In this document: positions 4,701 to 38,265 of the stretch, in pieces
How the letters are laid out: each line of letters begins with the position of its first letter
Position numbering within the stretch: position 1 is the stretch's first letter
Source of the DNA: Octopus bimaculoides
Lineage: Eukaryota
NCBI RefSeq assembly: GCF_001194135.2
Contig: NC_068997.1
Span: 50,954,183 to 50,993,977 of the forward strand
DNA length: 39,795 bases
Direction: 5' to 3'
The notes under the pieces: generated by a model
What the model was told of the DNA's origin: nothing
The model's input: the letters and a program-made list of their open reading frames with translations, nothing else
Database searches by the model: none
Translations under genes and position numbers: made by a program

Positions 4701-5699
4701 ACAGTGGTACTGATGCTATTGGTCTCCTTTTGCCAAACTGCTAAGTTACAGGGACAAAAACAAACCAACACTAGCTGTCAACTTGTGGCGGAGGACATAT
4801 ACACACACAATGGGCTTCTTTCAGTTTCCATCACTCACAAGAAGACCCAAAGCGTGATACAGAGGAGGTGAACCTAATACCAGCATTCTTACAACTACTA
4901 ATTCAACCTGGTTCAACACCACTACCAATGTTTAAAAGAATGGCATTTCACCTATATAATCATTTACAGAATAGAAATAAAAACAAAATGCACATATAGA
5001 AATAATCTGTTTACATACACCATATCAAATAGTGCCCTTGAAAGGGATAACCCATTTGATGCCACCCTGTCTAAAGTGATCTAAGCTAAAACCCCTTGAA
5101 ATTTTCATGATCATGTTCCAGATGGACTCAGCAACATAAGAGTCAAGACCAGTCCCTCCGGTGGGGCCATGGAAGTGCCACACAAAACCACCCAGCTGTA
5201 GAAACAATATCAAATCAGAGTCTGAGGTAGCTCTGCACAAACTGTCCCATACCAGCATAGACAATGGACGTTAGATGATGATGATAGCAGTTATGCAAAA
5301 GGGACTAAGAATACAGGAACTTAAAAGTGTAGTTCTGCTGCAATAAGCCCTAAAATGGTAATAAAATATTTACATATCCCAGCTGAGTAAGTCATCCCAC
5401 AAACACACTGCAATTAAATTGTTTACAAAGGAAATTACAGAAAAATAGATAAATGCAGAGATGCAAGACCATCCCATAATTAGCCAGACAGTCAGAACTT
5501 GATAGACAATAAAACAACCTAAGCAATTAAAATGTGACCCAGATCAACAATGATAGCCACAACACAGTAACCGGATACTAGAAAACCAATCTTGTTACAA
5601 TAACTAATAAAGGTAAAAATATTTTCCAGTGAAATGCTTCAGCATGGCAGCTAACAGGGAATGTGAAATTGTAGCTCTGTAAAACAGACATAGCAAAGA

Positions 5700-6364
5700 T
5701 GTAGCTTCAAGGATTGGAGTCGATGCCAAAAGAGTTCATAATGTCATGAAACACTAGTGTGATGGGTTCAAATGACATCTAATTGGATGCCATTAGAAAG
5801 AGAGAGTCACAAAATCCACAGAGAAGAACAAGGTAAATGGCTAAGTCACAATATCTCCCAGACAACCATGCAATGGGTTGTAAATCATCAAAATTGCAAT
5901 TGCTTCCAGACAGGTGCAAGGAATTGGCAGGAGATTCAGAGTGCCAGTGACAATGTCTCTCCATCTAGGTAGACAAAAAGACATTCACTGTAGAGGCTAT
6001 AGCAAATCAAAATAACAGGATCTTGGCATGAGGTTGGATGCGGTCCCAGAAGGTACCTCCAGGGCGTTTCACTGAATGAAACCCACCAGTGATGGTTTGG
6101 GTGGCAGTGTCATTCAATGCTGCAAAATCTCTGGTGTTCACTAAAGAGAAAATGGAAGTCAATTTACATGAAAACATTTCGCCATGGATGACCGAAGAAT
6201 GTGGAGACAATTGTTCACACAAAATAGCAGTTGTACAGGAGCCATTTCAGCAGGTTCCCCACCCCATGGACTTCGCTAGTTGGTCCATTCTAGAAAGGGA
6301 CACTTCAAGAATTTCTCAAAGATATCACTCTGAAGACAGCCATAGTCATGTGGTATTCATGTGA
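5700..6364 (+). pseudogene. Decayed Tc1/mariner transposase, DD37D (maT)-like
   Basis: Frameshifted fragments VDKKTFTVEAIANQNNRI (like SDEK.FTVE..N.QNDR), VMVWVAVS...LVF, PHPMDFASWSILE. Confidence 0.7.
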
Positions 6365-6514
6365 CTGATGTCAGCTGGCGATGGGCAATTGTAAAGGCTG
6401 ATGGAACTAGTTTCCTGGTTTCTAATCTAAGGGAAATAACCACAGTATAGCGAAGGGAGGCTACTTGTTTGAAGTGTAAAACGAGATCTAAAAATTCAGT
6501 AATGTTTGAATACT

Positions 6515-6707: not shown

Positions 6708-9700
6708 CTGAAATAGAAACAATGAAAACAGTTTTAAAACAAAATTAACCACTTTTTAAAAGAAAATTCCAGAAATCAACGAAAATATTTGAGTAAACTT
6801 CAGAAATGCTAAGTGTGTTCAGAGGAAATTCCAGAAGAATTACCATCACACGAACGAGACTAAACTTTCATCATGAGTTTACTTAACACGAATGTGGAAT
6901 ATCTACTATTTACATACCCGATAGGCACGATCTATGTTGTCCCTGAAAGGGAAGAAGGCGTCGGAACTCAGAGAAACTCCATCTAGACGTTTTATCCAAT
7001 CAATACGATCTTCCTGAAATTTAGAGAAAAAAAAAAAAAAAAAATCACCATTAAAATAATGAAGAATTTGGAAGTTGTGCAGTTCTAATCTTCCTAGCTA
7101 AAAACTTACTTTTGAAGTCTCACAGCCCCCTTAACTGCATAGGGTTCACTACCCACCCAAAACATATACAAACTAAAAATCGTATCTCATCCTGTTATCA
7201 GTTCTGCTTATCAATAACTTGTGATTTTAAAATTTGATGCTCATTTATGTCCCAAACACCTGCCTAATAGATAGCGAGCTTATTTTAACAAACCCATCAA
7301 ACTTAATTGAAATATGGCAGTGTTGATTCAGACAGAAACAACCAACAGGAATTCTACCTTGCCTCAAAATCTCTAAAATGGTGGAACAAAACAACATGCA
7401 CAAACCTCTGTGAACTCTGGTGGACGTTCCTCAAACAGATCTTCCCAAGTTGAAAGGGTCATATCCTGCAACGACAAAAAAAGAAAAAAGATGGTTATAA
7501 ATTCACATGAAAATATAGGCTTTGAGTCATAATCCCAATTGACTAAATAAGCTGAAAATCTCAACATACCTCACCAACAGTTCCAAGAACATAAACATCA
7601 ATAGCATTGGACATTTCTGCTCGTTTCACACCCTTCTTGAACTTCATGCCAAGAACATTAGGATGCTGTCGCAACCACCTTAGAGGAAAAGAAATACAAG
7701 AAGTTAATGCCCACAGGAGATAAATGATGGATTGAGACTACAACAAACAACTGGAATAATACAAAGTTTGGTTAGAACTCAGATACAGCCTCTTCAAATA
7801 TCTCCATAATGAAATCAGAAGAAGAAATCATCACAGCTCTCCAAAGAAATCAACCAGAAAACTGACACTCACCAGTTGTCAGCCTTGTCTCCAGCCAACC
7901 GTGTACAATGAATTCGCGATTGCTGGCCAGCACCGATACCAATCACCTAAAAATTAACCAGAGAAAACCGTTTTGAATAATACCCAGATTAACACAGCTT
8001 ATCAAAGAAGAGGAAACTCAGGAAGAGAGAGAGAGCAAAGCAACTGTACCTGTCCATCACGAGCATAGCAAACGGAGTTAGACTGGGTATACTTCAAAGC
8101 GATGGAAGCCACCAACAAATCACGGATAGCAGAATCAGGAAGCTGTAACAAGCAGAGAGAATGAGACACCATAATTATGAAGGGAGGGCAAAATTCTCAC
8201 CATACATATTAAACATAGAAACGTATAAAAGCAATCCACTTAAGAATAAAGTACTCATCCCCCACCACACCAAAGGTTACCCTGCCCAGGGGTCCCTTTT
8301 CGTTATTATACTTGCAAATCACTTGACAACTCCACCCATGCCAGCACCAGAACACCGAGTACAACTTAAACAATCAAGAGGGGATCCAATAAAGTATTTC
8401 TTAAAAAAAAAAAAAATTTTTTTCCTTATATATGGAGACTTTTGAAACAGCCGGTACATTAAGCAATATCGATAGAGCAAGCCTTAACACCTCTTGCTTT
8501 AGAAACTTGGTCTTAATACCATTACATGAAAGCAAATATCTTTCAAAGATTCCATAGCTTCGTATGCAAACCCTGAGAGAAAGTACTCAATAAGCTGCAC
8601 GGCGCAAAATAACACTCACCTTCTTGCCATCTGTCACCACGTTGTTGAAGAGATCTTTAGTAATAGGAGCATTATTACGGAGTTGCTGCAACTGCAACCC
8701 GAACAAAGTTCTGGTTTCAACAGGAGGGGCATCATAGTTGGGATCAATCTGAAAACCAGGAATCACATGATCAGCCAAAGCGAAAAAAAAAAAGCAGCAT
8801 AACTTAATAAACTCAGCAATTCAATAAGTTGTAGAAAATAAGATTTACGTTACAAACTAATTAGCAATTAAACACGAAATTATTATCAAAGGAGGGGATC
8901 AGAATTATAAGTTATGATCATCCACCCGTGGACAGGGAATGCAGTCAAGAACTGACCACATTCCTGTGACACAAAGGGTCAGTTGACACGCATGTAGAAT
9001 ATCATCATCTCCCCATACCTTAAATATAGATATCATCAGAAGAACAGGTAAAACAATAACCCCTTACCTGTAACACACAATAGTTGCCACCCTTTTTCTT
9101 CTTGAGAATTGTAAGAGCATTTGCCTCGTATCCAGGAGCTATGACGCCGTCTGAGACCTGAGAGGAAGAGAAAAAGAATTACTGAAACCATTCTAGCAGA
9201 TTAATAATGCAAACGGACAGGCATAGAATTCTATATAAATAAATGGCGGAGACGGACTATATGTAATCTGAACCCCCCCCCCTTATTAATTTTTTTTTAC
9301 GGAATCCCACGTTTTAGGCTATGGAGATTCCGATTCTGAAAAAAAATTTCAATTCCTCCCTCCNNNNNNNNNNAAAAAAATTTCAATTCCTCCCTCCCCC
9401 CACCAAACAGGCTATTTACATGCTAGAAATAACAGCTAAATCTCACAAAACTGGCGTTAGGGTTAGGTTTACCCTGTGGATCTATATAAAAACCGGGGAG
9501 GGGGGGAATCGAATTTTTGTTTACAGAATCGGAATCTCCATAGCCTAAAACGTGGGATTCCGTAAAAAAATAAATAAGGGGAAGGTTCAGATTACATATA
9601 GTCCATCTCTACCTAGAATTCTATATAAATAAATATCTGCCAAATGTAAATAAAACGCATAAATAGGTTTATAAAATTAGTTGCTTCAGAACAGCGAGAT

Positions 9701-12700
9701 GCCCAATAATCACCTGGAGAGTTACAGTAGTAAATCAGCTTAAACCCCCTACTTATGCAAATTAACATCTCAAATGTCCCTGCCTCATAAGTTGAAAAAC
9801 ACGAAGCCTTTTTTTAGGTACTACTGAAACAGCGCGGACCCGAACGCGCAGTCGCGAGTGGTCGATCCTAACCCTAACCACGTATTCATTTGCACACGCG
9901 GGTTAGGATCGACCACTCAAGACTAGCTAGCGCGGACGCTCTGCTTTAGTAGCACCCCTTTTTTATAAAGCCCCTGTTACTCGAAAGTTGGGAAACGTGT
10001 ATTAAAGAAATACACACACGAACAGTTTTCGGCGAAAATACCGGGTGTGTGTATTCCTTACCTTCGCCAAAACAAGAATAAATAAACACTACACTTTGAA
10101 TATTCAACAATCTCAGCGTCGTAAAATAGAGCAAAGGGGACAAACAGTAAAAGACTTTTAACAAGGCCCCACATTACCATCAGATTTCGCCTAATTATCT
10201 CAGCACTTAACTAAACCAACACTAGATTAGTATTTATAAACACGGTTCACCCGCCCGATCGCTTTAAAAATCATCTAAGAAAGCTAAAGTTCGCAATTAA
10301 AATAATGATTGTTAATCATTTAACGGGATTTGCAGTAAATCATGCAAGTGACCGGTAGTAGCGGTCGAGCACTGGGCAAACATTCAAGTCGCAAATCTCA
10401 AAACGAAGGGACGGCGGACACCACGAGGTCGGAAAACAATCATCGGTGATCGCTTACAATAAAGCTGATGTTTTAATAATGTTACAAACATTGATCAAAA
10501 GACAAAAAAAAACTTGATACTAAACTTGAAGACACCGAGACAATATTATGGTGCTTTCTTTGTTTTCCGTTCCTAAATTTTATACATGGAAAAAGTAAAT
10601 TAACCTAAATATACAAAGATCGTCTAATTACAGCTTAGTGCCCCACTGGCAGTTTCCTCACACATTTCCGTACATATTTACTCATCAAATCTGGTAGATA
10701 CATCGCAGAAGGTGCAGATTATAATCGGACGAATAAAATTTCGAAGGAAAAAGGTTTCGGATCATCAAAACTCTTCGATCGATTTTATTACCAATCTTAT
10801 TTTTTATCTACCTCACCCCTTAAATCTGTTCGAAATATAAAAATTACGTAGTTTACTCTCGAAGATGGATATTAATGAGATGAATACACTAATTCGAGTA
10901 AAAGGAGCGAACGATTCCGAGCATTCTCCAGAAAATCCTTTTCTGATTTTTAGCCTTGGAGTCGTAATCCACACCCTCGAAAATGCTTCATTGCATCTTT
11001 TTATTTATAATAAAATGCACTAACACATACCCGTAAAATAAATTTAAAAAAACCAATATAATAAAGTATGAATTTTTCTTTCTTCCAAATTTTAAAAATC
11101 ACTCCCCATGATCTTTTATGTAAACCACACGTATTTAATTATACGCAATATATTCTAGAAAAAATACACGTGTAAGTACATATAACTGTAGTTAGCAAAA
11201 TGAAATAAGAAGAAACGCGATCGCTTGGTTCTAAGAATTAAAGGTACTAAATATTGTGAAGCAAATAAATATCGCACGTGTTCCGAGAAATCGAGTCAGA
11301 GGAGACGAATAATACTCACCAGTTGAGACTGTAAAAGGGAGAAAGAAAGGAAACGAGACTTTATATAGTGAGGGAGACAGGAAGAGAAAAAGTACGGTAA
11401 ACTGACGCATGCGCTGAAAAACAGCAATTTTTTCCCTCCGAAGAGCAGGTAACTCTGTATTTTTAATTGAGGGCCATGAGATTTTGAAGGTTACTACTAA
11501 TAAACCCTTTCTACTATGGACGCAAAACCTGTATTTGGCGGAGGTTTCTAGTTGATTACGTAGACCCTGAAAGGATGAAAGGCAAAATCGACCTTGGCGG
11601 AATTTGAACTCGAGGTTAATGATTATTGAGTTTATTATATGTAGTTCTTTGGTGTGCTCCAATTTATTAGAAAGGTTAAAAAGAGGGAACAGAAAGCCAA
11701 GGAAATAAAGGCAGAAGCGAAAGCCAAAAGCACGAACACAGAATAAAACACAAAAATAGAGCAAAAGAAACAGTAAAAGAGACTTAGAGGAGAAAGTGCT
11801 TTGGTGTAGCAAGAGGAATTTGAAGAAACAGAATTTTTGAAGGAGGCAGTGTCCTGACAATTAACAATGGAGAATAGTTTAATTCCATACTTTTGACAAT
11901 TCTGAATCAAACAGAATGAAATAAAAAAAATATATACCAACTCCCCACCACCACCAGACAACAAAAAAATGAAAAATGTTTAACCCATTACCTCCCATAA
12001 TTCTATTAACTGGAATTTTTTTTTATGAAACTTTGATTTCTAGCATAAAACAGCCTTAGAAACACACTGGAATGATCAAAATAACATTTTAAATAGAAAT
12101 AAGCGAGATATTGGGTGAAAAATTAGCAAACCTCATTTGAATATCAGAGAAATGTACCTGGTAGATATAGCAAAAAGGTTAGATATGTGTAAATATTGAC
12201 AGATAATTACGAAATTTGTAATTTTTAAGCGATCTCATACGAGATCACTGGTAGGTAATGGGTTAAGGATTACAGAGTGATGAAAATGTTTCTATTTATT
12301 TATTTTTTATATAACATGAGATTTTAGAGACTGGAGCAGATAAAAATCCAGGCTAGAAAGGTTTCATAGCTAGTGGATTACCCCTCGTTTGGTTAATTAC
12401 TACTTTTGAGGTTCTGCTAGCTATGAAACATTGGCAGCCTGGATTTTATCTATGCCAGTCCCTAATTTTGGAATTCTATTCGCAAACACAGCAACCACTG
12501 CTGATAACTGTGAACTTTAACTTTTCCCAGATTATTCAACTTCAATACAGGAAAAATTTATGTTTTACATCAATAAACCATTATTGTTTCTGAAAGATGT
12601 TTTTTTATACCTTCATTGGACAGCTCAAAGCTTACTATCTTCACTCACCATAATCCTTGCATCTTACCATTTCATATTCCTGAGCATCAAACTAATACAC

Positions 12701-13052: not shown

Positions 13053-16000
13053 CATATATATATGTATACATATTTGTTTTCACCGTCCTGTTTATGTTAC
13101 CTATTTAGACCCTCCGTAAAATCCCAAATTTAATTTAATTTGCTTTGCGGGGCCAACTGTTTTATCAAAAGCGTATATTGTTGTTAAATGCTCGAAATAC
13201 GAGACTAGAAAAACAGCCAACAGCTGATGAAGGGTCGTTCATTATGTTGTTTTCCATTTGTGTCTTTTGTTGTTCGAAAAAATAGTTCATGTTCCATGAG
13301 GCTATAAGAGAAGACACCTGCCCAAGGTGCCACACAGTAAGACTGAACTCAGAACCATGTGGTTGGGAAGCAGGCTTCTTACCATACAGTCATGGAAAAA
13401 AAAAAACATGCAATTACCTCTCTTGATATGACTTTAGCTGTTGAGACATCACAGGGTTCGGAGAGAGCAATGAAGTCCCCAAATGATGACATGCGGTCAG
13501 CTCCTTCAGAGAATATAAACAATCAAAGTTAGAATCTGATTGGAGAAATCAGACATAGAATCATTTATTAAGTTGCTGTGTGTGGAAGACGGGGCAGGGC
13601 CCATGGCACTTGCTGGCCCTCTAAGATTGGTAAAATTGAGGCTGTTTACATTTTGTTTAAGCTGTTGCTGGGCAACCCTTGCTAGGAGACGATTCCAGTG
13701 GGAGGGAAGGAAGATCTGACAAAGGATTGGTCACAGTGATTTGTGCAGAAAGGAACATTGCAAGTTCACCTATTGCTGCTGTTCAATGAATTAAGAAGAT
13801 CAGATTGGTAAATTGAGATATGGGCCTTAGCTTGGCTTGAACTCATAATCATGTGATTAAATATCCAGCATCTTAACCTCATGCCCAAAGTATGTGTTGA
13901 ATAGAATTTTACTATTATAGTAAAATGGCAGTATAGTTAAGTGTGTTTCCCAGTCACATGGCTTTGGGTTCAGTCCCACTGCAAGGTACCTTGGACAAGT
14001 GCCTTCTACTATAGCCCTGATCTGATCAAAACATTGTGAGTAGATTTGGTAGATGGGAACTGAAAGAAACCCAATGTATGTCTTTGCAGTACTATGTTCC
14101 TTGGAAAAGGCTTTCATATCACACTAGCCAGATTTTAAAGAATTAGCTGTAAAAATTAAGACTCAACAAAGATCTTCAATAAGTAGAGATTAACCAATCT
14201 AGTTCAGCCAGCAAAACTATTGTGTTGGTGCAGAATTATTGCAGCTTTTTTTTCAACAAATTTTATTCAACAAAAGCAATAACAATATTTAACAAAAACA
14301 TCTTTAAATGACGGTCTGACCGTCTGCCAAGCAAATGGGAAGCAGGAATTGAAGTAGATGGTGAATATGCTCCAGAATAATCATTTCAAAGATGTTTTTG
14401 TTACATGCTATTGATTTTGTTGAAAAAAACCGCATTATGTACCAACCCAATATGTAGAGTTATCTTTTCTTACTCATAATTTCAAAACATGTCTTGTAGC
14501 TCTTGAACATAAATAAACATGGAGTTCCTCTTCTAAAAGAGTTTGGATTCTCTTATATAATATATAAAAGCTTGTTTAATATACTCACCACGGGCTCTTG
14601 CATAAGCAACAGCAAGGGGACTCAGATCCTCCATATCATTTACCATACACAGTTGAGCCTGTTCAGGACTAAGGGGTGTTCCTACTGCAGCACCTGACGA
14701 TAAAATAGACAAACAACATTGAAGAAAAAAAAAAGAAAAGAAAAAACCCACCAAAACAATCATTTGGGTATAATGGATTCTTTAATATCTCATGGTTCTT
14801 CTATACAAGATCTTCATAAGACATAAGATCCTGCTTAGAGAAATATTATGAGAGTCCTTTAGAAGAATATAAAACTCTGAAAGAAATTTCACAGATTAAA
14901 GGTTTCAGAAGAATTGTGAAGGAATGATCATGTCTTTCCTTTGGGATCAATAATATCAATAGAACAGTCAGGAACTGAGATGGAACCTGGAGACTTGATT
15001 TGGTGAGAACTGAATCTTCATTAGGCCGCACTGTATTTATTACAAAGAAAATCTCAGTCCTTGAAATTCAACAAACTGCCTGAAGACAAGAAAGACATTG
15101 ACAACACAGACATACTGCTTCTTTTATTCCCCCTTTTTTTTCATTTTAACATTCACTTTTCCATGTTTGTTTGAGTCAGATGAGATTTTCCCAAGACACC
15201 TGATGAAGACTGGAAGGTATATCAGCCGAAACATTGTGTTAACAAACAAGATGAGGACAAATATCTATCAAATGCAAATAATGTACTTGATCAGATATGT
15301 TTAGTTTACAGGGAAGACTGGAAATGAGGGACTCTGCTTGAATAATGAAATGCTTTTACAATTTTCTCAATGTTAACACAAGATCAAAATGAACACACAC
15401 ACGCACAGCTATTATTGAGCCAAAGAACATACCTGCAGGGCTGACATGTTTAAACGAGGTTGCTGCTGGCAAACCAAGAGCATTTTTCAGTTCTTTCACC
15501 AATTGCCAAGCATTGAAAGCATCACAGAGGTTGATAAATCCAGGGGAGCCATTTGCAACTGCAACAAAAAGAAAACTCCATTAATTCCAGATCCTAAATT
15601 TATCACCAGATCAGTCTTAGGAATGTAAATCTACCACCAAAGACAATCCAATCATGACCCTCCTGTTGATTTTTCAGACACAATGTATCTAGGGCTATAT
15701 TATCCAATGTGTGTCACTTTTATCATATCTTTTAGCAAAGATGTAATTGAACCAATTTGGTAACAACCCACCTCTCGGTTCTGTGGTACAAAATTTCTAA
15801 AATTAGTTTAACAACAAAATCATTTTATTTTCTTATTTTTTAAATCAACTGAAATAAAAAGAGGATGTTTCTAGATAACAGAAGAATTGAAAGGGCTTCA
15901 GTTATTCCTTGTAGGCTGAATGACCTGTAGAAACTAGTTGGGTTGTATACAGGTGAAGGAAGAGTTTGTGGGTGTCTACATGATACCACCTGTAATGAGT

Positions 16001-19000: not shown

Positions 19001-22000
19001 TCACGAGGACCCGCTTTACGAGACCCCAGGTTTACGAGTTTTATTTTATAAATATAAAAAAAAAGGCTAATTAACCATTTTGCGTGTGTGTATGTGTGGC
19101 AAATCCGGTTCTGACGCGTCTAAACAGCTGCATATGGCAACAGAATTAACTACGGCCTAAAATTTCAGTCGGTGCGTGCAATTTGTTGAGAGATTAATTA
19201 ATTATAAGTAAAAGTGGACACCGTTGATCGAAAAGTTAACTTCATTAATCATTAATCGGTTAACCAAAAAGTTAAGTTCGATAACCGTTAATCAGTTAAT
19301 TATTTCGCAATGTAACGGAAGTTATCGATAAACCGTCAACGTTAATTTTCATAATAGAAAAAAAACAAAACAAAACAAAAAGTTTTAGCTCTAAAACGAA
19401 CTACAAACACCTTTAAAACGGGCCAAAACTACAAAATCCGTAGAATCAACGGAATTCAATTAGTCCGATAATGATTTCCGGGGTTAACTTCAAAAGTTAA
19501 ATCGTTAGCGAAAATGTTAACTTCGTTAATTAATGGATTAATGGTCCGATGCCCAAGTTTGATTATAAGCTAATTCTTCGTACCACATTTTTATATTGTA
19601 TACGTGTATTTACACTGTTATTTTGGGCATTTTTTAAACCCACCTAAAATGTTGAAACGAAAGTGTACAACGGACACCGACGGGAAGAAAAAGAAACGAA
19701 AAGCCATCACTTTGGAAACGAAGTATGAAATTGTGAAAATGCACGATGGTGGTACAACTGTGAAGAACATCAGTGACAAATTTTCACTTAACTCGTCAAC
19801 TGTCTGCACAATTCTCAAAGAAAAACAAAAATATTTATCTCAAGTGAGAAATGCGCAGCTTTTGTACTCAACCTGGTCTCGTAAAAGAGATTCTGGAAGC
19901 ATTATTCCGGAAATGGAAAAACTTTTAAACGTATGGATAAGTGACACAACACAACGCATGCATATGAATGTCAACCGAGCGGCGATTCGGAGCAAAGCCT
20001 TGTCTCTTTTCAGTATGCTTAAAGAAATGAAAGGTGNNNNNNNNNNNNNNNNNNNNNNNNNNNNNNNNNNNNNNNNNNNNNNNNNNNNNNNNNNNNNNNN
20101 NNNNNNNNNNNNNNNNNNNNNNNNNNNNNNNNNNNNNNNNNNNNNNNNNNNNNNNNNNNNNNNNNNNNNNNNNNNNNNNNNNNNNNNNNNNNNNNNNNNN
20201 NNNNNNNNNNNNNNNNNNNNNNNNNNNNNNNNNNNNNNNNNNNNNNNNNNNNNNNNNNNNNNNNNNNNNNNNNNNNNNNNNNNNNNNNNNNNNNNNNNNN
20301 NNNNNNNNNNNNNNNNNNNNNNNNNNNNNNNNNNNNNNNNNNNNNNNNNNNNNNNNNNNNNNNNNNNNNNNNNNNNNNNNNNNNNNNNNNNNNNNNNNNT
20401 TCTGGAAACGTATGCCATCCAGAAGTTACATTGCTAAGGAGGAATCTGCGCGGCCTGGTTTCCAAGTTGCTAAAGATCGGGTGACATTATTATTTGGAGG
20501 AAATGCATCTGGAGATTTAAAATTAAAACCGATGCTAGTTTATCGAGCGGAAAATCCGAGGGCACTTAAAGGCATCTTAAAAAGTACCCTTCCAGTTATA
20601 TGGAAATCTAATAAAAAAGCTTGGGTGACAGCAACATTATTTGAAGAATGGTTTTCATATCACTTTGTGCCAGAAGTTAAGGAATATTGTGATAAGAACG
20701 AACTTCCATTTCATGCAATGCTACTTATTGGCAATGCACCTAGCCACCCTCCAATTCTGAAACATCTCCATCCTAACGTCAAAGTTATTTTTTTGCCTCC
20801 AAATACAACATCACTTCTGCAACCAATGGATCAGGGTGTTATTGCCACTTTTAAAGCCCATTATTTACGTTTCACATTTGCAATGTTGAATGAAGAAACA
20901 GACAGAGAAGGGGCACCAACTCTAATGGAATTCTGGAAAAATCACAATATTTATTCCGCAGTGAAAATCATAAGTAAAGCTTGGGATAACATCCCTCAAA
21001 AGAATATGAAGGGCACTTGGAAAAAACTTTGCCCTCAATTTCTTGATGATTTTGAGGGTTTTGAATCCCTGCAAGAAAATGTAGATAAAGAAATAGAAGA
21101 AATTGTAAAGCTGGCGAATGAATTGAATCTCAATGTGTCGGCAAGTGATATCGTTGAGCTGCTTCAATCACACAGTGATGAACTCACTAACGAAGACCTT
21201 ATTGCAATGCAAGAGCAGGCAACAAAAGAAGAAAAGGACACGGTTGAAGAGGCGCCAGTTAATGCATTCACTTTTAAAGGACTCAAGGAAGCGTTTCAAC
21301 ATTTGGATAAAGCCTTGGAAATTTTTCAAGCACAAGATCCAAATTTTGAACGAAGTGCAAAAATTTCTACCACCATAACAAATGCTTCTGCGTGTTACCG
21401 AGAAATTTATAAAGAGCAAAAAAAAAAAGCTAAGCAAACAACTGTAGAAGTGTTTATCAAAAAGGAATCAACAAATGCTTGTGAGTTGGAAATTGCATCT
21501 ACAAGTGATGGTGTGCACGAGCCTAATGCAAGGGAATATGATTCTGAAAACAATTCTAATTATAATATTTTTTTATTATAAATGATTCTTGACATTCTTT
21601 TTACTTTACACGAAATATTCTTTACATTGTTCTGTTGTTTTATTGCCATTTATTTACAAGTATTATAAATTTTATAAGTAAAATATTTTTCTGGGGACCA
21701 AATTACGATTTATAACATTGTTATTATGGGAAATTATTGCTCTGCTTTACGAGCAATCTCTGGGAACAAATTAACTTGTATATCGATGCATTTGTGTATT
21801 AGACATTTCATTTCTTTCTGATGAAGAGTTCTGTCTTCACAGGAAGTAAAACTTTGCTAAGTTTTTCTATTCACTATTTCACTGGATGACCGAATAGTCA
21901 GAACCTCTTTAATACAAAATTACTATTTGTAAATCTCACAACGCGAGATATTCAGCAACAGTACTTTGTAGTAAAGATTGTTTGCCAACATAACATAGCA

Positions 22001-23135
22001 GTCCTGGTTAAGCCAGCTGGAGACGATGCCTCCTGGGGCTAAATTACAGCAACATTAGTCCTAAACCAGGACTGTCATGTTATGTTGGAAAACAATCTTT
22101 ACTCTTTAATACACTTCATAACACTAATAATATATTTAACAACAGCAGTAATATACTCCATGTATTTACTTCATAACAACCATAATCAATACAAATGTAA
22201 TTTTAAAATCCTGGTAACGAGAGGATCGTTTTGGAAACGGGCTCTCATGTAACTATGCTAAATCCTTCAAGTATTTACTCTCTCTCTTTTACTCTTTTAC
22301 TTGTTTCAGTGATTTGACTGCGGCCATGCTGGAGCACCGCCTTTGTAGTCGAGAAATTCGACCCCAGGACTTATTCTTTGTACTTATTCTATCGGTCTCC
22401 TTTTGCCGAACCGCTAAGTTACGGGGACATAAACACACCAGCATCAGTTATCAAGCCATGCTAGGGGGACAAACACACACACACACACACATATATATAC
22501 AACGAGCTTCTTTCAATTTCCGTCTACCAAATCCACTCACAAGGCTTTGGTCAGCCCGAGGATATAGTAGAAGACACTTGCCCAAGGTGCCGCGCAGTGG
22601 TACTGAACCCGGAACCATGTGGTTGGTAAGCAAGCTACTTACCACACAGCCACTCCTGCACCTATATACACTTATATAATTTTATATTAATATTGTTACT
22701 TTACCCCTTATAGTCGTCAGGGTCACAAATGACAGTAACACGTGCAAAGTTCTTTGCAGCAGCACGGAGGAGAGTAACGCCACCTGGTGAGAAAGGAAGG
22801 AAGGATTAATTAATATCATAATTGTCATGTGCATTTGAGTTAAGAGATTAAGCAGCATCTGATTAAACTTATTAAATGACATGGAGTCTAATGAGGCTTT
22901 GCATTCAAAGTAATTCCATGATCAAATTTATGGTGACATCCGTTTTATCTGATATTACACGGATGCAGGAGGGATGGCTGTGCGGTTAAGAAGCCTGCTT
23001 CACAACCATGGAGTTTCTGGTTCAGTTCCACTGTGTGACACCTAGGGCAAGTGGCTTCTGTTAGAGAGCTGTGTTGACCAAAACTTTGTGAATAGATTTG
23101 GTAAATGGAAACTGGAAGAAGCCCATTGCGTGTAT

Positions 23136-30400: not shown

Positions 30401-30739
30401 AGATTGTCTGCAGTAAACTACATATGGGTGTTATACCCGATTATTTATGTAGGTTTGCTTATGTATATATATTAATCTATATAGTTATATTTACGCTTGT
30501 CTTGCATTGTGCATTTTATTTTATATATAAAATCTAAAGCCGCGGGGGGCACTAATGTGTACTTATACACACCAGTAAAACAGGCCATTTTTTAATTTAA
30601 GCCCATAAAAACGAAAATACCTCAATACATGAGTATGTGTGTGTGTGTGTGTCTGTATGTAGAGATAGATAGATGTGGAGTAATATTTTTTCGTATTACC
30701 TCGTTCGCATCTTGTAGCCGTGTACGGTAAAGTTGCCAT
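6588..30739 (-). CDS. ATIC: Bifunctional purine biosynthesis protein ATIC/PurH, 19 exons, 598 aa
   Basis: Exons in transcript order: 30700-30739, 26820-26946, 26231-26307, 25083-25149, 23868-23956, 22705-22783, 17522-17594, 16673-16829, 15433-15558, 14589-14693, 13418-13503, 9068-9157, 8620-8748, 8050-8142, 7873-7946, 7570-7678, 7406-7465, 6918-7013, 6588-6707. Total 1797 nt, all introns GT..AG, phases consistent, no internal stops. PurH motifs present: [79 protein letters not shown], terminal HTNLRLFHH*. Confidence 0.97.
6792..6883 (-). ncRNA. Box C/D snoRNA, SNORD30-like (18S Am1383-equivalent guide), ATIC intron 18
   Basis: 8-bp terminal stem AGUAAACU/AGUUUACU, C box AUGAUGA (6874-6868), D CUGA (6803-6800). 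A 12-nt guide AGUCUCGUUCGU is followed by D'-like GUGA and is complementary to the conserved 18S ACGAACGAGACU. Confidence 0.78.
6918..7013 (-). CDS. ATIC: ATIC exon 18 ([32 protein letters not shown])
   Basis: cag|...|gtatgt, 96 nt, [10 protein letters not shown] motif. Confidence 0.97.
7073..7140 (-). ncRNA. Candidate H/ACA-type hairpin with ACA box, ATIC intron 17
   Basis: Lower stem GCAGUU/AACUGC followed directly by ACA+3 nt, internal pocket, upper stem GGCU..GAGACUU/AAGUUUU..AGCU, about 60 nt from the 3' splice site. No convincing adjacent H box or 5' hairpin. Confidence 0.3.
7406..7465 (-). CDS. ATIC: ATIC exon 17 ([20 protein letters not shown])
   Basis: cag|...|gtttgt, 60 nt. Confidence 0.93.
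7570..7678 (-). CDS. ATIC: ATIC exon 16 ([36 protein letters not shown])
   Basis: aag|...|gtatgt, 109 nt. Confidence 0.97.
7774..7840 (-). ncRNA. SNORD95: Box C/D snoRNA, SNORD95-like, ATIC intron 15
   Basis: Stem AGAGCU/AGUUCU, C box GUGAUGA (7834-7828), D' CUGA (7818-7815), D CUGA (7782-7779). The D guide AGAGGCUGU is complementary to 28S ACAGCCUCU, with D+5 on the A of CAG. Recalled human U95 has CAGAGGCUGUUUCUGA. D box is about 100 nt from the 3' splice site. Confidence 0.78.
7873..7946 (-). CDS. ATIC: ATIC exon 15 ([25 protein letters not shown])
   Basis: tag|...|gtgagt, 74 nt. Confidence 0.97.
8050..8142 (-). CDS. ATIC: ATIC exon 14 ([31 protein letters not shown])
   Basis: cag|...|gtacag, 93 nt. 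Confidence 0.97.
8620..8748 (-). CDS. ATIC: ATIC exon 13 ([43 protein letters not shown])
   Basis: cag|...|gtgagt, 129 nt. Confidence 0.97.
8894..9014 (-). ncRNA. SNORD10: Box C/D snoRNA, SNORD10 (mgU6-77)-like, ATIC intron 12
   Basis: Terminal stem GGGGA/UCCCC, C box AUGAUGA (9008-9002), D' CUGA (8982-8979), D CUGA (8902-8899). The D' guide CAUGCGUGUCAA pairs with U6 UGACACGCA, placing D'+5 on U6 C77, and with 28S UGACGCGCAUG. Recalled human SNORD10 has CAUGCGUGUCAUCUGA. Confidence 0.85.
9068..9157 (-). CDS. ATIC: ATIC exon 12 ([30 protein letters not shown])
   Basis: cag|...|gtaagg, 90 nt. Confidence 0.97.
9245..9613. mobile_element. Foldback MITE with ~120-bp TIRs, flanked by a 21-bp direct repeat
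   Basis: TIRs GGCGGAGACGGACTATATGTAATCTGAACC... / GGTAGAGATGGACTATATGTAATCTGAACC...; TAGAATTCTATATAAATAAAT at 9224-9244 and 9614-9634. Confidence 0.8.
9817..9956. mobile_element. Small foldback MITE (MULE/Merlin-like)
   Basis: TIRs GGTACTACTGAAACAG / GGTGCTACTAAAGCAG, inner 19-bp inverted repeat GAGTGGTCGATCCTAACCC, near-identical 9-bp flanks (ctttttttA / cctttttta). Confidence 0.65.
11318..11414 (-). promoter_or_regulatory. Putative internal Pol II promoter (TATA + TCT/5'TOP initiator) with short first exon and splice donor, ATIC intron 11
   Basis: TATATAAAG (11367-11359) lies 30 nt upstream of CCCTTTT (TSS about 11337-11339), then about 19 nt to CTG|GTGAGT (donor 11319). GCGCATGCGTCA motif at 11414-11403, E-boxes CACGTG at 11275 and 11167, locally CpG-rich. 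Confidence 0.6.
11984..12262. mobile_element. piggyBac-type MITE
   Basis: TTAA|CCCATTACCT ... AGGTAATGGG|TTAA. Confidence 0.75.
12325..12464. mobile_element. TA-flanked foldback MITE
   Basis: Long imperfect inverted repeats GAGACTGG..GATAAAAATCCAGGCT..TTTCATAGCTAG / CTAGCTATGAAAC..AGCCTGGATTTTATC..CCAGTCCC. Confidence 0.65.
12735..13070. repeat. Compound microsatellite (TA/CT/TCTA/TCCA)
   Basis: Read directly from the sequence. Confidence 0.95.
13418..13503 (-). CDS. ATIC: ATIC exon 11 ([28 protein letters not shown])
   Basis: aag|...|gtaatt, 86 nt. Confidence 0.96.
14220..14450. mobile_element. mariner-type MITE
   Basis: TA|TTGTGTTGGTGCAGAATTATTGCAGC ... CCGCATTATGTACCAACCCAA|TA; Hsmar1/MADE-like TIR pattern. 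Confidence 0.75.
14589..14693 (-). CDS. ATIC: ATIC exon 10 ([34 protein letters not shown])
   Basis: cag|...|gtgagt, 105 nt. Confidence 0.96.
15433..15558 (-). CDS. ATIC: ATIC exon 9 ([41 protein letters not shown])
   Basis: cag|...|gtatgt, 126 nt, catalytic Lys-His pair of the FKHVSP motif. Confidence 0.97.
16673..16829 (-). CDS. ATIC: ATIC exon 8 ([19 protein letters not shown]...[15 protein letters not shown]...)
   Basis: cag|...|gtaaat, 157 nt. Confidence 0.97.
17139..17258. repeat. 30-bp minisatellite x4
   Basis: GTTTATA(G/A)(T/C)(G/A)A(T/C)CAAATGTT(T/C/A)GTGCCACAT repeated four times. Confidence 0.9.
17522..17594 (-). CDS. ATIC: ATIC exon 7 ([24 protein letters not shown])
   Basis: tag|...|gtgaga, 73 nt. 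Confidence 0.94.
17934..18250 (+). mobile_element. tRNA-derived SINE of a further family
   Basis: TGGCTCAGTGGTTAGA (A box), GAGTCCGAATCCC (B-box-like), TTCTTGAGCAAGATACTTTA central motif. Confidence 0.6.
19209..19561. mobile_element. hAT-type MITE nested in the 5' region of the Tigger element
   Basis: Exact 8-bp TSD ATTATAAG (19201-19208 and 19562-19569), imperfect ~14-bp TIRs (TAAAAGTGGACACC / CAAACTTGGGCATC), many subterminal GTTAAC/TTAAT repeats. Confidence 0.75.
19649..21581 (+). CDS. Tigger/pogo (TIGD1-like) transposase with CENP-B-type HTH and DDE_1 domains, interrupted by an N gap
   Basis: N-terminal part: [39 protein letters not shown]-terminal part: [63 protein letters not shown]. 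No stops in the sequenced parts; frame across the 20037-20399 gap is unknown. Confidence 0.85.
22287..22662 (-). mobile_element. Full-length tRNA-headed SINE with internal (TA)(TG) tract and (GAGTAAAA) tail, octopus-type
   Basis: Head GGTGCAGGAGTGGCTGTGTGGTAAG..GGTTCCGGGTTCAG with A/B-box-like motifs and body ending GGATTTGGTAGACGGAAA. Related copies at about 2778-2900(+), 4300-4420(-), 13280-13390(-), 13935-14070(+), 22970-23130(+), 25870-26180(+), 28345-28680(+), 28939-29305(-), 31020-31240(-), 31810-31975(+), 33085-33220(+). Confidence 0.85.
22705..22783 (-). CDS. ATIC: ATIC exon 6 ([27 protein letters not shown])
   Basis: cag|...|gtaaag, 79 nt. Confidence 0.96.
23868..23956 (-). CDS. ATIC: ATIC exon 5 ([29 protein letters not shown])
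   Basis: tag|...|gtaaga, 89 nt, NLYPF and EQIDIG motifs. Confidence 0.96.
25083..25149 (-). CDS. ATIC: ATIC exon 4 ([22 protein letters not shown])
   Basis: cag|...|gtatgt, 67 nt, phase-compatible. Confidence 0.93.
26231..26307 (-). CDS. ATIC: ATIC exon 3 ([25 protein letters not shown])
   Basis: cag|...|gtaagt, 77 nt, GRVKTLHP motif. Confidence 0.97.
26820..26946 (-). CDS. ATIC: ATIC exon 2 ([41 protein letters not shown])
   Basis: cag|...|gtaagt, 127 nt, IMP cyclohydrolase (MGS-like) N-terminus. Confidence 0.95.
30700..30739 (-). CDS. ATIC: ATIC exon 1, putative ([14 protein letters not shown])
   Basis: gaagATGG start context, 40 nt to a G|gtaata donor. Phase 1 matches exon 2 (G+TA=Val). 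Lies in a CpG-richer stretch. No homology support for this peptide, and an alternative exon 1 in the 27846-28139 gap cannot be excluded. Confidence 0.6.
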
Positions 30740-32021
30740 CTTCAGCGAAGTTTCTCAACAATGTTTCTGCAACACGTGCAACGAAAAATAAGGGAGGTAA
30801 CTGTCACAGATGCAAAACTAATTGCTCCATTCATTAAGGAGACGTTGTTAATTTATACGTCCCACTTTTCGGGGGACGGCGGAAGCCGGGATAATCGTTA
30901 GAGCGTCAGACAAAAAAATATTTTGTGTTGTTTACGGTCTGAGTTCAAATCCCACGTAAGTTAACTTTGCGTTTTAACCTTTTAGCGTCAAATAAAATAG
31001 AGTACCCGTCACTATCATATTTACTCTTTTACTTGTTTTAGTCATTTGACTGTGGCCATGCTGGAGCACCGTCTTTAGTCGAGCAAATCGAACCCAGGAC
31101 TTATTCTTTGGAAGCCTAGTACTTATTCTATCGGTCTTTTTTTGCCGAACCGCTAAGTTACGGGGACGTAAACACAACAGCATCGGTTGTCAAGCGAAAT
31201 TAGGGGGACAAACACAGACACACAAACACACACATATATNNNNNNNNNNNNNNNNNNNNNNNNNNNNNNNNNNNNNNNNNNNNNNNNNNNNNNNNNNNNN
31301 NNNNNNNNNNNNNNNNNNNNNNNNNNNNNNNNNNNNNNNNNNNNNNNNNNNNNNNNNNNNNNNNNNNNNNNNNNNNNNNNNNNNNNNNNNNNNNNNNNNN
31401 NNNNNNNNNNNNNNNNNNNNNNNNNNNNNNNNNNNNNNNNNNNNNNNNNNNNNNNNNNNNNNNNNNNNNNNNNNNNNNNNNNNNNNNNNNNNNNNNNNNN
31501 NNNNNNNNNNNNNNNNNNNNNNNNNNNNNNNNNNNNNNNNNNNNNNNNNNNNNNNNNNNNNNNNNNNNNNNNNNNNNNNNNNNNNNNNNNNNNNNNNNNN
31601 NNNNNNNNNNNNNNNNNNNNNNNNNNNNNNNNNNNNNNNNNNNNNNNNNNNNNNNNNNNNNNNNNNNNNNNNNNNNNNNNNNNNNNNNNNNNNNNNNNNN
31701 NNNNNNNNNNNNNNNNNNNNNNNNNNNNNNNNNNNNNNNNNNNNNNNNNNNNNNNNNNNNNNNNNNNNNNNNNNNNNNNNNAAATGTGTGTATGTAACTT
31801 CGAAGTGTGGGTGCAGGCGTGGCTGTGTGGTGAGAAATATGATTCTCAACCACATAGCTGCGGGTTCGATCCCGCTGCGTGGCACCTTGGGCTAGTGTCT
31901 TCTCCTATAACCCCGGGACGACCAAACCCTTGTGAGTGGATTTGGTAGACGGAAACTGAAAGAAGCCTGTTGTGTGTGTGTGTGTGTGTATTTGTGCTAA
32001 CGTTCCTGCCAGTTCGCCGCC

Positions 32022-37000: not shown

Positions 37001-37540
37001 AGAATATGGTCGATGGGAGCTCTCTATGCGGGTGTTCTATAGTGGATTAGTGGAGGGCAAAAGCAACGAGGTTCTTGGGGTAACTCTGGACGTCGAGGAA
37101 AATCAATTGGTTGATCTGTTCCAGAGAAATTTCGAGCATGGACAATTTCTGTAAACTCCTGGTCTGACAATGCTACCGGGTGTCATTGCCGGTTCGTGAT
37201 AAATTCTCTCGGTACTGAAGAGTCGTCAGTCAGGCAGAGTAACGAAACCGTTTTGCACGGATTGGAAATATATCCAAATATTGTTGATTTGTGAAGTTCT
37301 GCCCAATACCTGTTGTTACACGTAGAACGGATCCGGCACTTGGCTGAGTCTACTGTGAGGATCGTACGGCTATTTTCCTTGGTTAGGGGGTAAATACAGG
37401 CAGTGTTTTTTGTCTGATGGCCTTAGCGAAGGAAACTTGTTGAAAGATGGATGAAAATGGCGAGCATAGTCAGCGTATAAACCTGTAGACTGAGGCAGGA
37501 AAATAAGGAGATGGCCCTTGCCCTAATAGTCAGGATGACC
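37000..37540 (-). mobile_element. Possible decayed non-LTR retrotransposon RT fragment
   Basis: GC-richer non-repetitive block, broken frames, LYADY resembling the YADD motif; weak. Confidence 0.3.
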
Positions 37541-37574
37541 GTGGCTTTGTAGGGCCTCCAATTGCAGTCTACAG

Positions 37575-37675
37575 CAATCGCTACCACTACTATCATCGTC
37601 CGTCATCATCATCATCATCATCATCGTCGTCGTCGTCGTCATCATCATCACCGACATTACCACTACTATCATCAC

Positions 37676-37712
<37 letters not shown>

Positions 37713-37825
37713 GTCGTCGTCGTCGTCGTCGTCATCAGAATCATCATCATCACCAATACCACTTCATCATCATCACCACCACTACCACTGCTATCATCAC
37801 CATCATCGTCGTCGTCGTCATCATT
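37575..37825. repeat. Compound trinucleotide microsatellite (CAT/CGT/CAC); a similar tract is at 1-60
   Basis: Read directly from the sequence; explains the poly-His/Met ORFs. Confidence 0.95.
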
Positions 37826-37964
37826 GGTCGTGTAGAACGCCCATCTAATGTATTCTGGAGATCGATAAAATAAGAACCACTTAAATACTTACGTTTAATT
37901 CAATTAACGACTCCTGCAGCCCTGAACGATTATCATGCCGTCAGACCATGGCAGAAATTCCTCC

Positions 37965-38007
37965 CCCCTCCTCCTCCTCCTCCTTCTTCTTCTTCTTATC
38001 ATCATCA

Positions 38008-38059
<52 letters not shown>

Positions 38060-38176
38060 CGATAGTTCTCCCTCTAGGTTNNNNNNNNNNNNNNNNNNNN
38101 NNNNNNNNNNNNNNNNNNNNNNNNNNNNNNNNNNNNNNNNNNNNNNNNNNNNNNNNNNNNNNNNNNNNNNNNNNNN

Positions 38177-38263
<87 letters not shown>

Positions 38264-38265
38264 TT
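37965..38265. repeat. (CCT)n-(TCA)n-(TTA)n and (CTTT)n microsatellites around a gap
   Basis: Read directly from the sequence. Confidence 0.95.

Follow-up and report, generated by a model that had tools for sequence, protein, structure and literature searches.

The window analysed here, 39,795 nt of Octopus bimaculoides DNA, carries the ATIC gene on the minus strand. Exons 2-19 have GT-AG borders throughout. Intron 11 (13417-9158) separates exon 11, placed at 13418-13503 by the gene model, from exon 12 at 9068-9157. The exon 12 acceptor has a pyrimidine fraction of 0.89 and ends in CAG. A first-pass annotation of this DNA had proposed it as the splice partner of a donor at 11320 inside intron 11, and the exon start it gave, 9157, agrees with the gene model. 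Exons 13-19 follow at 8748-8620, 8142-8050, 7946-7873, 7678-7570, 7465-7406, 7013-6918 and 6707-6588, the last including the stop codon. ATIC has a promoter of its own, which together with exon 1 occupies 30700-30857. There, TATAAAT (30857-30851) is followed by a pyrimidine run (30797-30783), a CACGTG (30778-30773), the ATG at 30739 and the end of exon 1 at 30700. This promoter is 19.5 kb upstream of the candidate promoter in intron 11 that is discussed below. Intron 11 also contains a foldback (MITE-like) insertion at 9224-9634, outside the proposed unit. The insertion is 370 nt long, has inverted arms at 9249-9346 and 9516-9609 and a 21-nt flanking direct repeat, and is absent from O. sinensis. 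It holds an assembly gap (9364-9373) with an identical 24-mer on either side of the Ns. Neither the promoter motifs nor any reading frame is affected by this gap.

The 3' introns of ATIC host box C/D snoRNAs. A strict box C/D scan of the gene returned exactly three canonical candidates, one each in introns 12, 15 and 18, all on the minus strand. The snoRNA in intron 12 (8895-9013) is SNORD10 (RF01290). Its Rfam score of 46.3 bits exceeds the gathering score of 37; it has the C and D boxes and a terminal stem, and is the only match in the whole genome, with no other detectable copy. Its ortholog in O. sinensis is 93% identical, with boxes and guide conserved. Despite the 93% identity, Rfam scores for the orthologs in O. 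sinensis and O. vulgaris do not reach the reporting threshold. The candidate in intron 15 (about 7774-7840) has C, D' and D boxes and a terminal stem, is 96% identical in O. sinensis and finds weak Rfam matches only. The candidate in intron 18 (about 6793-6882) has an 8-bp terminal stem and is 93% identical in O. sinensis. All three had been picked out by eye in the first-pass annotation, which had also seen none in introns 1-10; the Rfam search likewise returned none in introns 1-11. The fourth snoRNA that it considered possible, in intron 17, fell away, as neither a snoRNA nor a conserved island was found in that intron (identity 0.75).

A set of promoter-like motifs is present upstream of these snoRNAs, in intron 11 and on the ATIC strand: GCGCATGCG, TATATAAAG, a pyrimidine tract ending in CCCTTTT, a GTGAGT donor after CTG, and two CACGTG boxes. 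The palindrome-like GCGCATGCG, possibly an NRF1-type site, occurs once in the window, at 11406-11414 within the conserved GCGCATGCGTCAGT; relative to the putative +1 it spans about -77 to -69, and it is identical in O. sinensis and O. vulgaris. CTTCCTGT at 11377-11384, inside the conserved block TCTCTTCCTGTCTCC, contains the reverse GGAA and may bind an ETS/GABP-like factor; it is invariant in three Octopus species. The TATA-box-like TATATAAAG at 11359-11367 is also invariant in the three species. It is followed by the 21-nt tract TTTCCTTTCTTTCTCCCTTTT (11333-11353), whose CCCTTTT at 11339-11333 supplies the putative TCT/TOP initiator, with the start C at 11339-11337. The 5'TOP/TCT pattern, taken here as a +1 C followed by at least four pyrimidines, is present, and CCC(+1)TTTTA at 11339-11332 fits the TCT consensus YYC(+1)TTTYY at seven of eight positions, in a tract that equally fits a 3' splice site. 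The putative non-coding first exon would be about 20 nt long (11320-11339; 22 nt in O. sinensis), without an ATG, and would end in ..CAACTG at 11320. The donor GTGAGT follows at 11314-11319. Its 9-mer CTGGTGAGT scores eight of nine to the consensus, is identical to the donor of ATIC exon 15 and equals the best donors of the gene in strength. The two E-boxes, at 11275-11280 (about +58) and 11167-11172 (about +166), are both conserved. The donor, GCGCATGCG and the E-boxes were thus found as first described, and the core needs correction in two respects. The spacing of 30 nt between TATA and initiator holds for the C of CTTTT (11337) and is 28 nt for the first C of CCCTTTT. The pyrimidine run, said to be initiated by a C at 11339, begins at 11353, so it reaches 14 nt upstream of the proposed start.

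Since the tract is followed by ACAG (11332-11329), it can also be read as part of a 3' splice site, with the pyrimidines as its polypyrimidine stretch. This second reading, together with the upstream reach of the run, counts against an internal promoter. The nine nucleotides up to the donor, TCTCAACTG (11328-11320), could then be an in-frame micro-exon or a poison exon of ATIC, which would insert Ser-Gln-Leu between ..ISRE and VSDG. A pyrimidine tract and ACAG acceptor followed by a GTGAGT donor is the textbook layout of a 3' and then a 5' splice site, and 9 nt would preserve the frame between the phase-0 exons 11 and 12. However, neither O. sinensis nor O. vulgaris has kept the AG, a 2-nt indel there would break the frame, and the searches returned no ATIC protein with such an insert. 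We consider a micro-exon very improbable.

The motifs are located at the upstream edge, in minus-strand terms, of a single-copy, non-coding domain of 1.4 kb (10040-11420) that retains CpG. Its CpG observed/expected ratio (o/e) is 1.2-2.1, as opposed to 0.0-0.6 in the flanking, CpG-depleted ATIC gene body. For calibration, the ratio is 1.3-1.5 at ATIC's own promoter and 1.2-2.0 in the promoter island of RPS3A. In the 2.34-Gb genome, the candidate promoter segment occurs only once, as does the adjoining 1.3 kb downstream, and the island is therefore not a repeat. The features of a promoter CpG island, namely a ratio near or above 1, CpG-depleted flanks and non-repeat sequence, are all found in this domain. 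Other CpG-rich windows in ATIC, at 19.0-19.7 kb and 9.8-10.04 kb, come from transposons. An orthologous CpG-retaining domain is seen at the same place in O. sinensis, where 33 of the 58 CpG sites of the domain are kept versus 6 of 20 in the 3' introns (Fisher P = 0.03). The CpGs of the domain decay at close to the neutral rate, since non-CpG identity would lead one to expect a kept fraction of 0.68. In the octopus methylome, constitutively expressed genes have methylated bodies and unmethylated TSSs (PMC9476566). The methylation state at this locus is read from CpG o/e and CpG decay, with CpG retention as a proxy for open chromatin; on this reading, the motifs probably stand at the edge of a germline-unmethylated island. 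The island is almost wholly downstream of the proposed TSS instead of straddling it, which counts against an internal promoter.

Comparison with other cephalopods gives further support to the motifs. O. sinensis matches the six motifs singled out at first at 44-45 of their 46 positions (P = 0.01-0.04 by permutation), and function-compatible versions of the six are present in O. vulgaris. The initiator tract is CCCTTTC in O. sinensis and CTCTTTC in O. vulgaris, and so stays pyrimidine, and the GTGAGT donor is kept in both species after a 3-nt deletion. The order and spacing of TATA, pyrimidine initiator and donor, which the first-pass annotation had set as a check, are retained in both. Taken whole, the promoter segment shares 78-83% identity with O. 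sinensis and does not exceed the mean for introns, 0.85-0.89, and this counts against the proposal; the snoRNAs, at 93-96%, stand out from that mean. In Sepia pharaonis, the island, the TATA-TCT-donor composite and all three snoRNAs are absent together. This joint absence, a single contrast, would fit a linked origin of the element and the snoRNAs. At the level of sequence, the testable predictions of an internal promoter appear weakly favoured.

Chance could also have produced this picture. In an AT-rich intron, a TATA-like word may by accident precede a polypyrimidine-AG pseudo-acceptor and a decoy GTGAGT donor, and the domain may be CpG-rich for another reason, for instance because its sequence arose more recently or because few mutations occur locally. 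Within the 266 kb scanned, the composite TATAWAWR-TCT-GTRAGT turns up at this site and at its ortholog and nowhere else. Genome-wide, it has 767 matches versus 1865 for a reversed-pattern control, mostly in TA microsatellites and SINEs. It is thus not enriched, and taken alone it has little predictive value. Layouts of this kind are common for pseudo-exons, and ATIC introns contain five decoy GTGAGT sites. Identity of the segment at or below the intron mean also agrees with chance, as does the ability of transposons to give CpG-rich windows in this gene, and the motif set was defined after the sequence had been inspected. Against this, only about 0.004 composites are expected in the 24-kb gene strand, and the one observed falls on the border of a CpG island that is single copy. 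Both O. sinensis and O. vulgaris retain every CpG-containing motif, GCGCATGCG and the two CACGTG boxes, and the near-neutral decay of CpG in the domain also argues against this explanation. We regard chance as unlikely, if well worth weighing.

The island may instead be a real unmethylated regulatory element that does not feed the 3' exons of ATIC. It could be an intragenic ATIC enhancer with E-box, NRF1-like and ETS-like sites, or it could act as promoter for a non-coding RNA, unstable or independent, that terminates within intron 11 or is transcribed from the opposite strand. The conservation of both the CpG island and the motifs suits such an element, and the island reaches 1.3 kb beyond the proposed TSS on its downstream side, like a unit of its own. 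AATAAA signals are present inside intron 11 on the minus strand. Neither an ORF nor an Rfam family was found in the domain, and its indels, which are not multiples of three, rule out coding. Yet an enhancer needs no TATA, TCT-like start and strong donor in the orientation of ATIC at the island edge. Between 11319 and 9158, neither an internal exon nor another conserved acceptor came to light, and the C-box-like sequences of the domain are not conserved. A regulatory element of this type is rather unlikely in our judgement.

Downstream of the donor at 11320, no acceptor other than that of exon 12 is both strong and conserved. In the predicted product of splicing 11320 to 9157, the first ATG is at nt 58, is out of frame and leads to a stop in exon 13, so the predicted spliced RNA would be prone to nonsense-mediated decay (NMD). 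As first claimed, no in-frame ATG precedes exon 16. That ATG opens a 117-aa ORF to the normal stop, and the intron 11 element could accordingly be a promoter that drives a shortened ATIC protein, lacking the N-terminal part and starting at the exon-16 Met. We find this hardly credible: eight out-of-frame ATGs come first, the exon-16 Met is Leu in O. sinensis, and the fragment would miss most of the AICARFT domain. In the collections searched, no such product is on record, and neither a transcript-derived nor a partial or truncated ATIC product from octopus was found.

The reading we prefer is that intron 11 holds an internal TOP-type promoter that feeds a nested snoRNA host transcript, which is plausible but short of an even chance on the sequence evidence. 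In this model, a germline-unmethylated island of promoter type would lie in intron 11, with a TATA plus oligopyrimidine core at its upstream edge pointing in the same direction as ATIC. RNA polymerase II would start at a C at about 11339-11337. The 20-nt leader exon would be spliced from 11320 to the next strong acceptor, that of exon 12 (9157), and the transcript would continue through ATIC exons 12-19. Removal of introns 12, 15 and 18 would release SNORD10 and two further box C/D snoRNAs, and the spliced RNA, lacking a usable ATIC frame, would be non-coding and NMD-prone. The three snoRNAs would then have a promoter of the ribosome-biogenesis type, separate from the one of ATIC 19.5 kb upstream. 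ATIC's own promoter, which carries an E-box, can explain snoRNA expression without a second promoter. We also propose, more tentatively, that an enzyme gene doubles as a nested snoRNA host, in which an NMD-targeted RNA would reuse exons 12-19 solely for snoRNA release, and that promoter and snoRNAs arose together in the octopod lineage, because both are absent from Sepia. New here are the single-copy status, the CpG-retaining domain, the conservation of the motifs in Octopus, the likeness to RPS6 and the exon 12 acceptor.

That likeness emerges from a calibration with two ribosomal-protein genes of the same genome, RPS6 and RPS3A (n = 2; the first exon of RPL19 was left out). In RPS6, TATAAAT is followed 30 nt later by the C-start pyrimidine run CCTCTTTCTC, and then by a short 5' exon and a donor. 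The layout of the candidate is comparable, with its TATA-like box, the pyrimidine run at the same distance, a short putative first exon and a donor. RPS3A lacks a TATA; it shares with the candidate a CACGTG core, in CCACGTGG adjoining its TOP run, and a location in a CpG island. The first exons of both genes carry or precede the real start codon of a translated mRNA, whereas the candidate leader has none. The candidate also resembles intragenic 'orphan' CpG islands that serve as alternative promoters, and the unmethylated TSSs within methylated gene bodies of invertebrates (in octopus, pattern MP2, PMC9476566): it is a CpG-retaining island in a constitutively expressed gene whose body is otherwise depleted of CpG and presumably methylated. 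Most orphan islands lack a TATA/TOP core, unlike the candidate, whose methylation is judged from CpG o/e and decay.

The 5'TOP/TCT non-coding snoRNA host genes GAS5, UHG/SNHG1 and U17HG (Smith and Steitz 1998; Pelczar and Filipowicz 1998, both as cited in PMC6954239) are among the known systems closest to the proposed unit. Such hosts have a C-start oligopyrimidine initiator, a short leader exon and one snoRNA per intron, as in the candidate, where introns 12, 15 and 18 downstream of the start hold one each. Their spliced product lacks a conserved ORF and is an NMD substrate; the same absence of a conserved ORF and a premature stop are seen in the candidate, on its predicted splice product. 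GAS5-type hosts are free-standing genes with their own exons, whereas the candidate, past its 20-nt leader, is predicted to borrow the 3' half of an enzyme gene. Dual-initiation snoRNA host promoters combine a YC/TOP start tied to snoRNA output with a canonical start for the host mRNA (PMC6954239, Nepal et al. 2020; PMC8176728, Fafard-Couture et al. 2021). Their logic would be common to the candidate: the levels of snoRNA and host are uncoupled, and NMD clears the by-product. In those promoters, however, YR and YC starts are intertwined in one core promoter, while the TOP-type start of the candidate would be in intron 11, 19.5 kb further downstream, and would take in no part of ATIC but the one that bears the snoRNAs. 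The candidate would therefore work alike without being a member of this class, and, if real, it would represent a spatially split version of the dual-initiation principle.

The candidate promoter lies in intron 11 of ATIC, a purine-synthesis enzyme gene on the minus strand. The ATIC exons were located with a guide protein, used for location only, and their borders were then set by hand. Exons 2-19 have GT-AG at all borders and give a 584-aa open frame with 94% identity to O. sinensis ATIC, and exon 1 (ATG at 30739) is positioned by the O. sinensis N-terminus. In the rebuilt gene model, exon 12 starts at 9157, as the first-pass annotation had claimed, and intron 11 spans 13417-9158. This intron contains an N run (9364-9373) at the centre of a 370-nt foldback element, a MITE-like insertion at 9224-9634 with inverted arms of ~100 nt (9249-9346 and 9516-9609) and a 21-nt flanking direct repeat. 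Because both sides of the Ns carry an identical 24-mer, the gap is probably artefactual and its two flanks overlap. The entire element is absent from O. sinensis, and neither the element nor the gap overlaps an exon or any of the candidate-promoter motifs.

All of these motifs were found where the first-pass annotation had placed them. On the minus strand they are GCGCATGCG (11414-11406), the TATA box TATATAAAG (11367-11359), CCCTTTT (11339-11333), a CTG/GTGAGT donor whose intron begins at 11319, and two CACGTG E-boxes (11280-11275 and 11172-11167). The TATA box had been put exactly 30 nt before a C-initiated pyrimidine run (CCCTTTT). The spacing is indeed 30 nt to the C of CTTTT but 28 nt to the first C of CCCTTTT, and the run actually begins at 11353 rather than 11339 and is followed by ACAG. 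The pyrimidine run and ACAG can also be read as a 3' splice site, after which come a 9-nt in-frame pseudo-exon (TCTCAACTG) and the donor. A chance collection of motifs around such a pseudo-exon is a somewhat unlikely explanation of the site. Use of the 9 nt as a genuine micro-exon is disfavored because both O. sinensis and O. vulgaris have lost the required AG and carry a 2-nt indel that disrupts the frame; we regard this reading as very improbable. An RNA polymerase III or snRNA-type unit was rejected because TTTT occurs at +4 to +7.

Conservation within Octopus bears on the chance reading from both sides. O. sinensis is alignable across intron 11, where identity in the promoter segment (78-83%) does not exceed the average for the intron (0.85-0.89). 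The six motifs of the first-pass annotation, chosen ahead of any comparison, retain 44-45 of 46 positions in O. sinensis with a single T to C substitution, and random segments of the same lengths match this retention in 1-4% of draws. O. vulgaris retains GCGCATGCGTCAGT, TCTCTTCCTGTCTCC, TATATAAAG, a CTCTTTC start, GTGAGT, and both E-boxes. The two species amount to roughly one comparison because they are close relatives.

The rarity of the motif combination was assessed with a composite defined as TATAWAWR, YYCTTTY 28-33 nt on, and GTRAGT within the next 130 nt. Only the candidate site and its O. sinensis ortholog match the composite in 266 kb of cephalopod ATIC loci, read on both strands; the number expected in the 24-kb ATIC strand is ~0.004. 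Genome-wide, there are 767 matches versus 1865 for a reversed-pattern control; the matches are mostly TA microsatellites or a SINE. As a class the composite is thus not enriched, and by itself it says little. A genome-wide GCGCATGCG-N-TATA pattern was uninformative, since microsatellites and a repeat family dominate its matches.

Two octopus TOP genes, RPS6 and RPS3A, served as calibrators; RPL19, with its exon 1 unplaced, was left out. RPS6 has TATAAAT, CCTCTTTCTC 30 nt on, and a leader of ~38 nt, followed by ATGAAG/gtatgt. RPS3A has CCACGTGG and CTCTTCCTTTCTCACTTCT, followed by ATG, and is without a TATA box. From these layouts, every component of the candidate is found in genuine octopus ribosomal-protein promoters (n = 2 genes). 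The promoter of ATIC (30773-30857, minus strand) carries TATAAAT, a pyrimidine run (CCTCCCTTATTTTTC) ~60 nt downstream, and CACGTG 34 nt before the ATG; it may support canonical as well as pyrimidine starts.

The candidate promoter stands at the upstream edge of a CpG-retaining domain. The CpG observed/expected ratio is 1.2-2.1 at ~11420-10040 versus 0.0-0.6 in the flanking ATIC gene body. Similar values are seen at the ATIC promoter (1.3-1.5) and at the RPS3A promoter of the same genome (1.2-2.0). In the octopus methylome, constitutively expressed genes have methylated bodies and unmethylated TSSs (PMC9476566). The island is present at the orthologous position in O. sinensis. Between the two species, 33 of 58 CpG sites are kept in the domain, for which non-CpG identity predicts 0.68, and 6 of 20 in the 3' introns, for which 0.62 is predicted. 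The difference in retention gives Fisher P = 0.03 against the 3' introns and P = 0.054 against all outside sequence. Together, the CpG ratio and CpG retention point to low germline methylation of the domain. That intron 11 holds some form of unmethylated promoter or regulatory island is probable. A regulatory island that does not feed the ATIC exons is a version we consider somewhat unlikely; an enhancer would not need the TATA box, TCT-like start, and strong donor placed in ATIC orientation at the island edge. A nested protein-coding gene was rejected: neither strand has a convincing ORF, frame-breaking indels separate the species, and annotation of the O. sinensis locus calls ATIC only.

A repeat or transposon origin of the candidate promoter and the domain was also rejected, because the 181-nt promoter-like segment is single copy, as is the adjoining 1.28 kb on its downstream side. 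Young transposons too create CpG-rich windows in ATIC, as shown by the 700 nt before a transposase-like ORF in intron 6, where the ratio reaches 1.7-2.3. This long ORF (19574-21581, plus strand) contains an N run and resembles by eye a pogo/Tigger-type DDE transposase with an N-terminal HTH. A CpG-rich palindromic repeat at 9810-10036, which contains short telomere-like runs of TTAGGG/CCCTAA and a GCGAGTGCGCGCACCGGGA..AGTACC motif, adjoins the domain and was left out of it. The repeat is arranged differently at the same spot in O. sinensis (30696-31010 of the comparison locus L002), and a related copy lies upstream of RPL19 (2590-2720 of locus L011). Copies of a SINE-like repeat (translating as ..FKFRQGR..LSS..) occur at ~11500-11700, ~35600, ~36050, ~36850, and ~39450, and the copy directly upstream of the candidate promoter is 88-94% identical in O. 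sinensis. Elsewhere, a hairpin in intron 6 (21971-22102) gives sub-threshold miRNA-model matches on both strands (mir-7131, 45 bits vs 74) and is most likely an inverted-repeat element. ORF fragments at 5000-6400, downstream of the ATIC polyA site, look by eye like a decayed Tc1/mariner-type transposase (..NPPVMVWVAVS..). A long low-complexity block at 37500-38300, with His, Asp, Ser, or Ile runs depending on the frame, adjoins a (GAAA/GGAA)n repeat and an N run.

The candidate donor, the 9-mer CTGGTGAGT, is identical to the ATIC exon 15 donor and agrees with the consensus at 8 of 9 positions. Of five pyrimidine-rich YAG acceptors downstream of the candidate donor, the best is that of exon 12 at 9157. 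The AG is lost in O. sinensis at 11185 and 10888, and the acceptors at 9481 and 9230 fall within the species-specific foldback. In the proposed mechanism, the 20-nt leader (11339-11320), which ends in ..CCCTTTTACAGTCTCAACTG, would be spliced from 11320 to 9157. The first ATG of the predicted RNA (leader plus exons 12-19) is at nt 58 and out of frame, and the stop falls in exon 13, well ahead of the final junction. As the first-pass annotation stated, this RNA has no in-frame ATG until exon 16, and that codon is Leu in O. sinensis. Judging from sequence, any RNA starting here would most likely join exon 12, be non-coding and NMD-prone, and free three snoRNAs on splicing. A truncated ATIC protein begun at the exon 16 ATG is the least probable of the alternatives, and extremely so. 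In protein collections, the exon 12-19 protein query found no octopus product above 76% identity, exact look-ups of truncated ATIC products found none, and the Octopus ATIC protein cluster holds three full-length NCBI proteins and no Logan members; all three results are uninformative on transcription.

A strict scan for C and D boxes plus a terminal stem of 4 bp or longer finds exactly three box C/D candidates in ATIC, in introns 12, 15, and 18. These had been named beforehand; intron 17, which had been listed as possible, shows nothing. The reported lack of snoRNAs in introns 1-10 was borne out by the strict C/D scan and by a relaxed-threshold Rfam search of introns 1-11, although for H/ACA snoRNAs the background identity of introns 1-10 (0.87-0.91) is too high for conservation islands to discriminate. 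Intron 11 downstream of the candidate start likewise has no snoRNA by Rfam (E <= 5). C-box-like spots at ~10767 and ~10445 were rejected, as both are missing D boxes and the ~10767 C box is lost in O. sinensis. The intron 12 candidate (8895-9013) is SNORD10 by Rfam (46.3 bits vs 37), with a single detectable copy in the 2.34-Gb genome, within ATIC. Rfam does not report the O. sinensis and O. vulgaris orthologs of SNORD10 at the gathering threshold, although they are 93% identical. In O. sinensis, all three snoRNAs are 93-96% identical and keep their boxes and guide regions, versus 75-87% identity for the rest of their introns. In human, SNORD10 is hosted by EIF4A1, a TOP gene.

In Sepia pharaonis, the ATIC locus shares its exon structure with octopus. 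No box C/D candidate or composite occurs there, nothing in it matches the three snoRNAs, and its 7.8-kb intron 11 has no CpG island and two TATA-like words without TOP context. No snoRNA was detected in ATIC of Patella and Crassostrea, the strict C/D scan covering Patella only. As far as sampled, snoRNA hosting by ATIC is thus octopod-specific on these scans. The joint presence of island and snoRNAs in Octopus and their joint absence in Sepia is a suggestive, single contrast. A U2 snRNA match (48.7 bits vs gathering 46) lies in Sepia ATIC intron 12 (L004 42156-42288), on the strand opposite to ATIC.

Taken together, a nested snoRNA-host RNA that starts at an internal TOP-type promoter and joins exon 12 is the leading reading but a tentative hypothesis, possible rather than probable. 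If it is not real, three octopod-specific ATIC-hosted snoRNAs and an orphan CpG island remain. If it is true, the promoter would be among the first dissected cephalopod core promoters, and a datable case, since the candidate is found in Octopus and absent in Sepia. It would also allow the study of how newly settled snoRNAs gain translation-coupled control. The uncoupling of intronic snoRNAs from their host mRNAs is an active question, and the known routes are dual-initiation promoters and NMD isoforms (PMC6954239, PMC8176728). A third route would be a dedicated internal TOP promoter, placed in a non-TOP gene so as to cover just the 3' introns that carry snoRNAs; our literature search found nothing on ATIC as a snoRNA host, nor on internal-promoter snoRNA hosts or such a split arrangement. 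Among described systems, free-standing TOP snoRNA hosts and dual-initiation promoters come closest (PMC6954239, PMC8176728). The candidate would work like the latter, but their starts are intertwined in one core promoter, whereas it lies 19.5 kb from the ATIC promoter and therefore falls outside that class.
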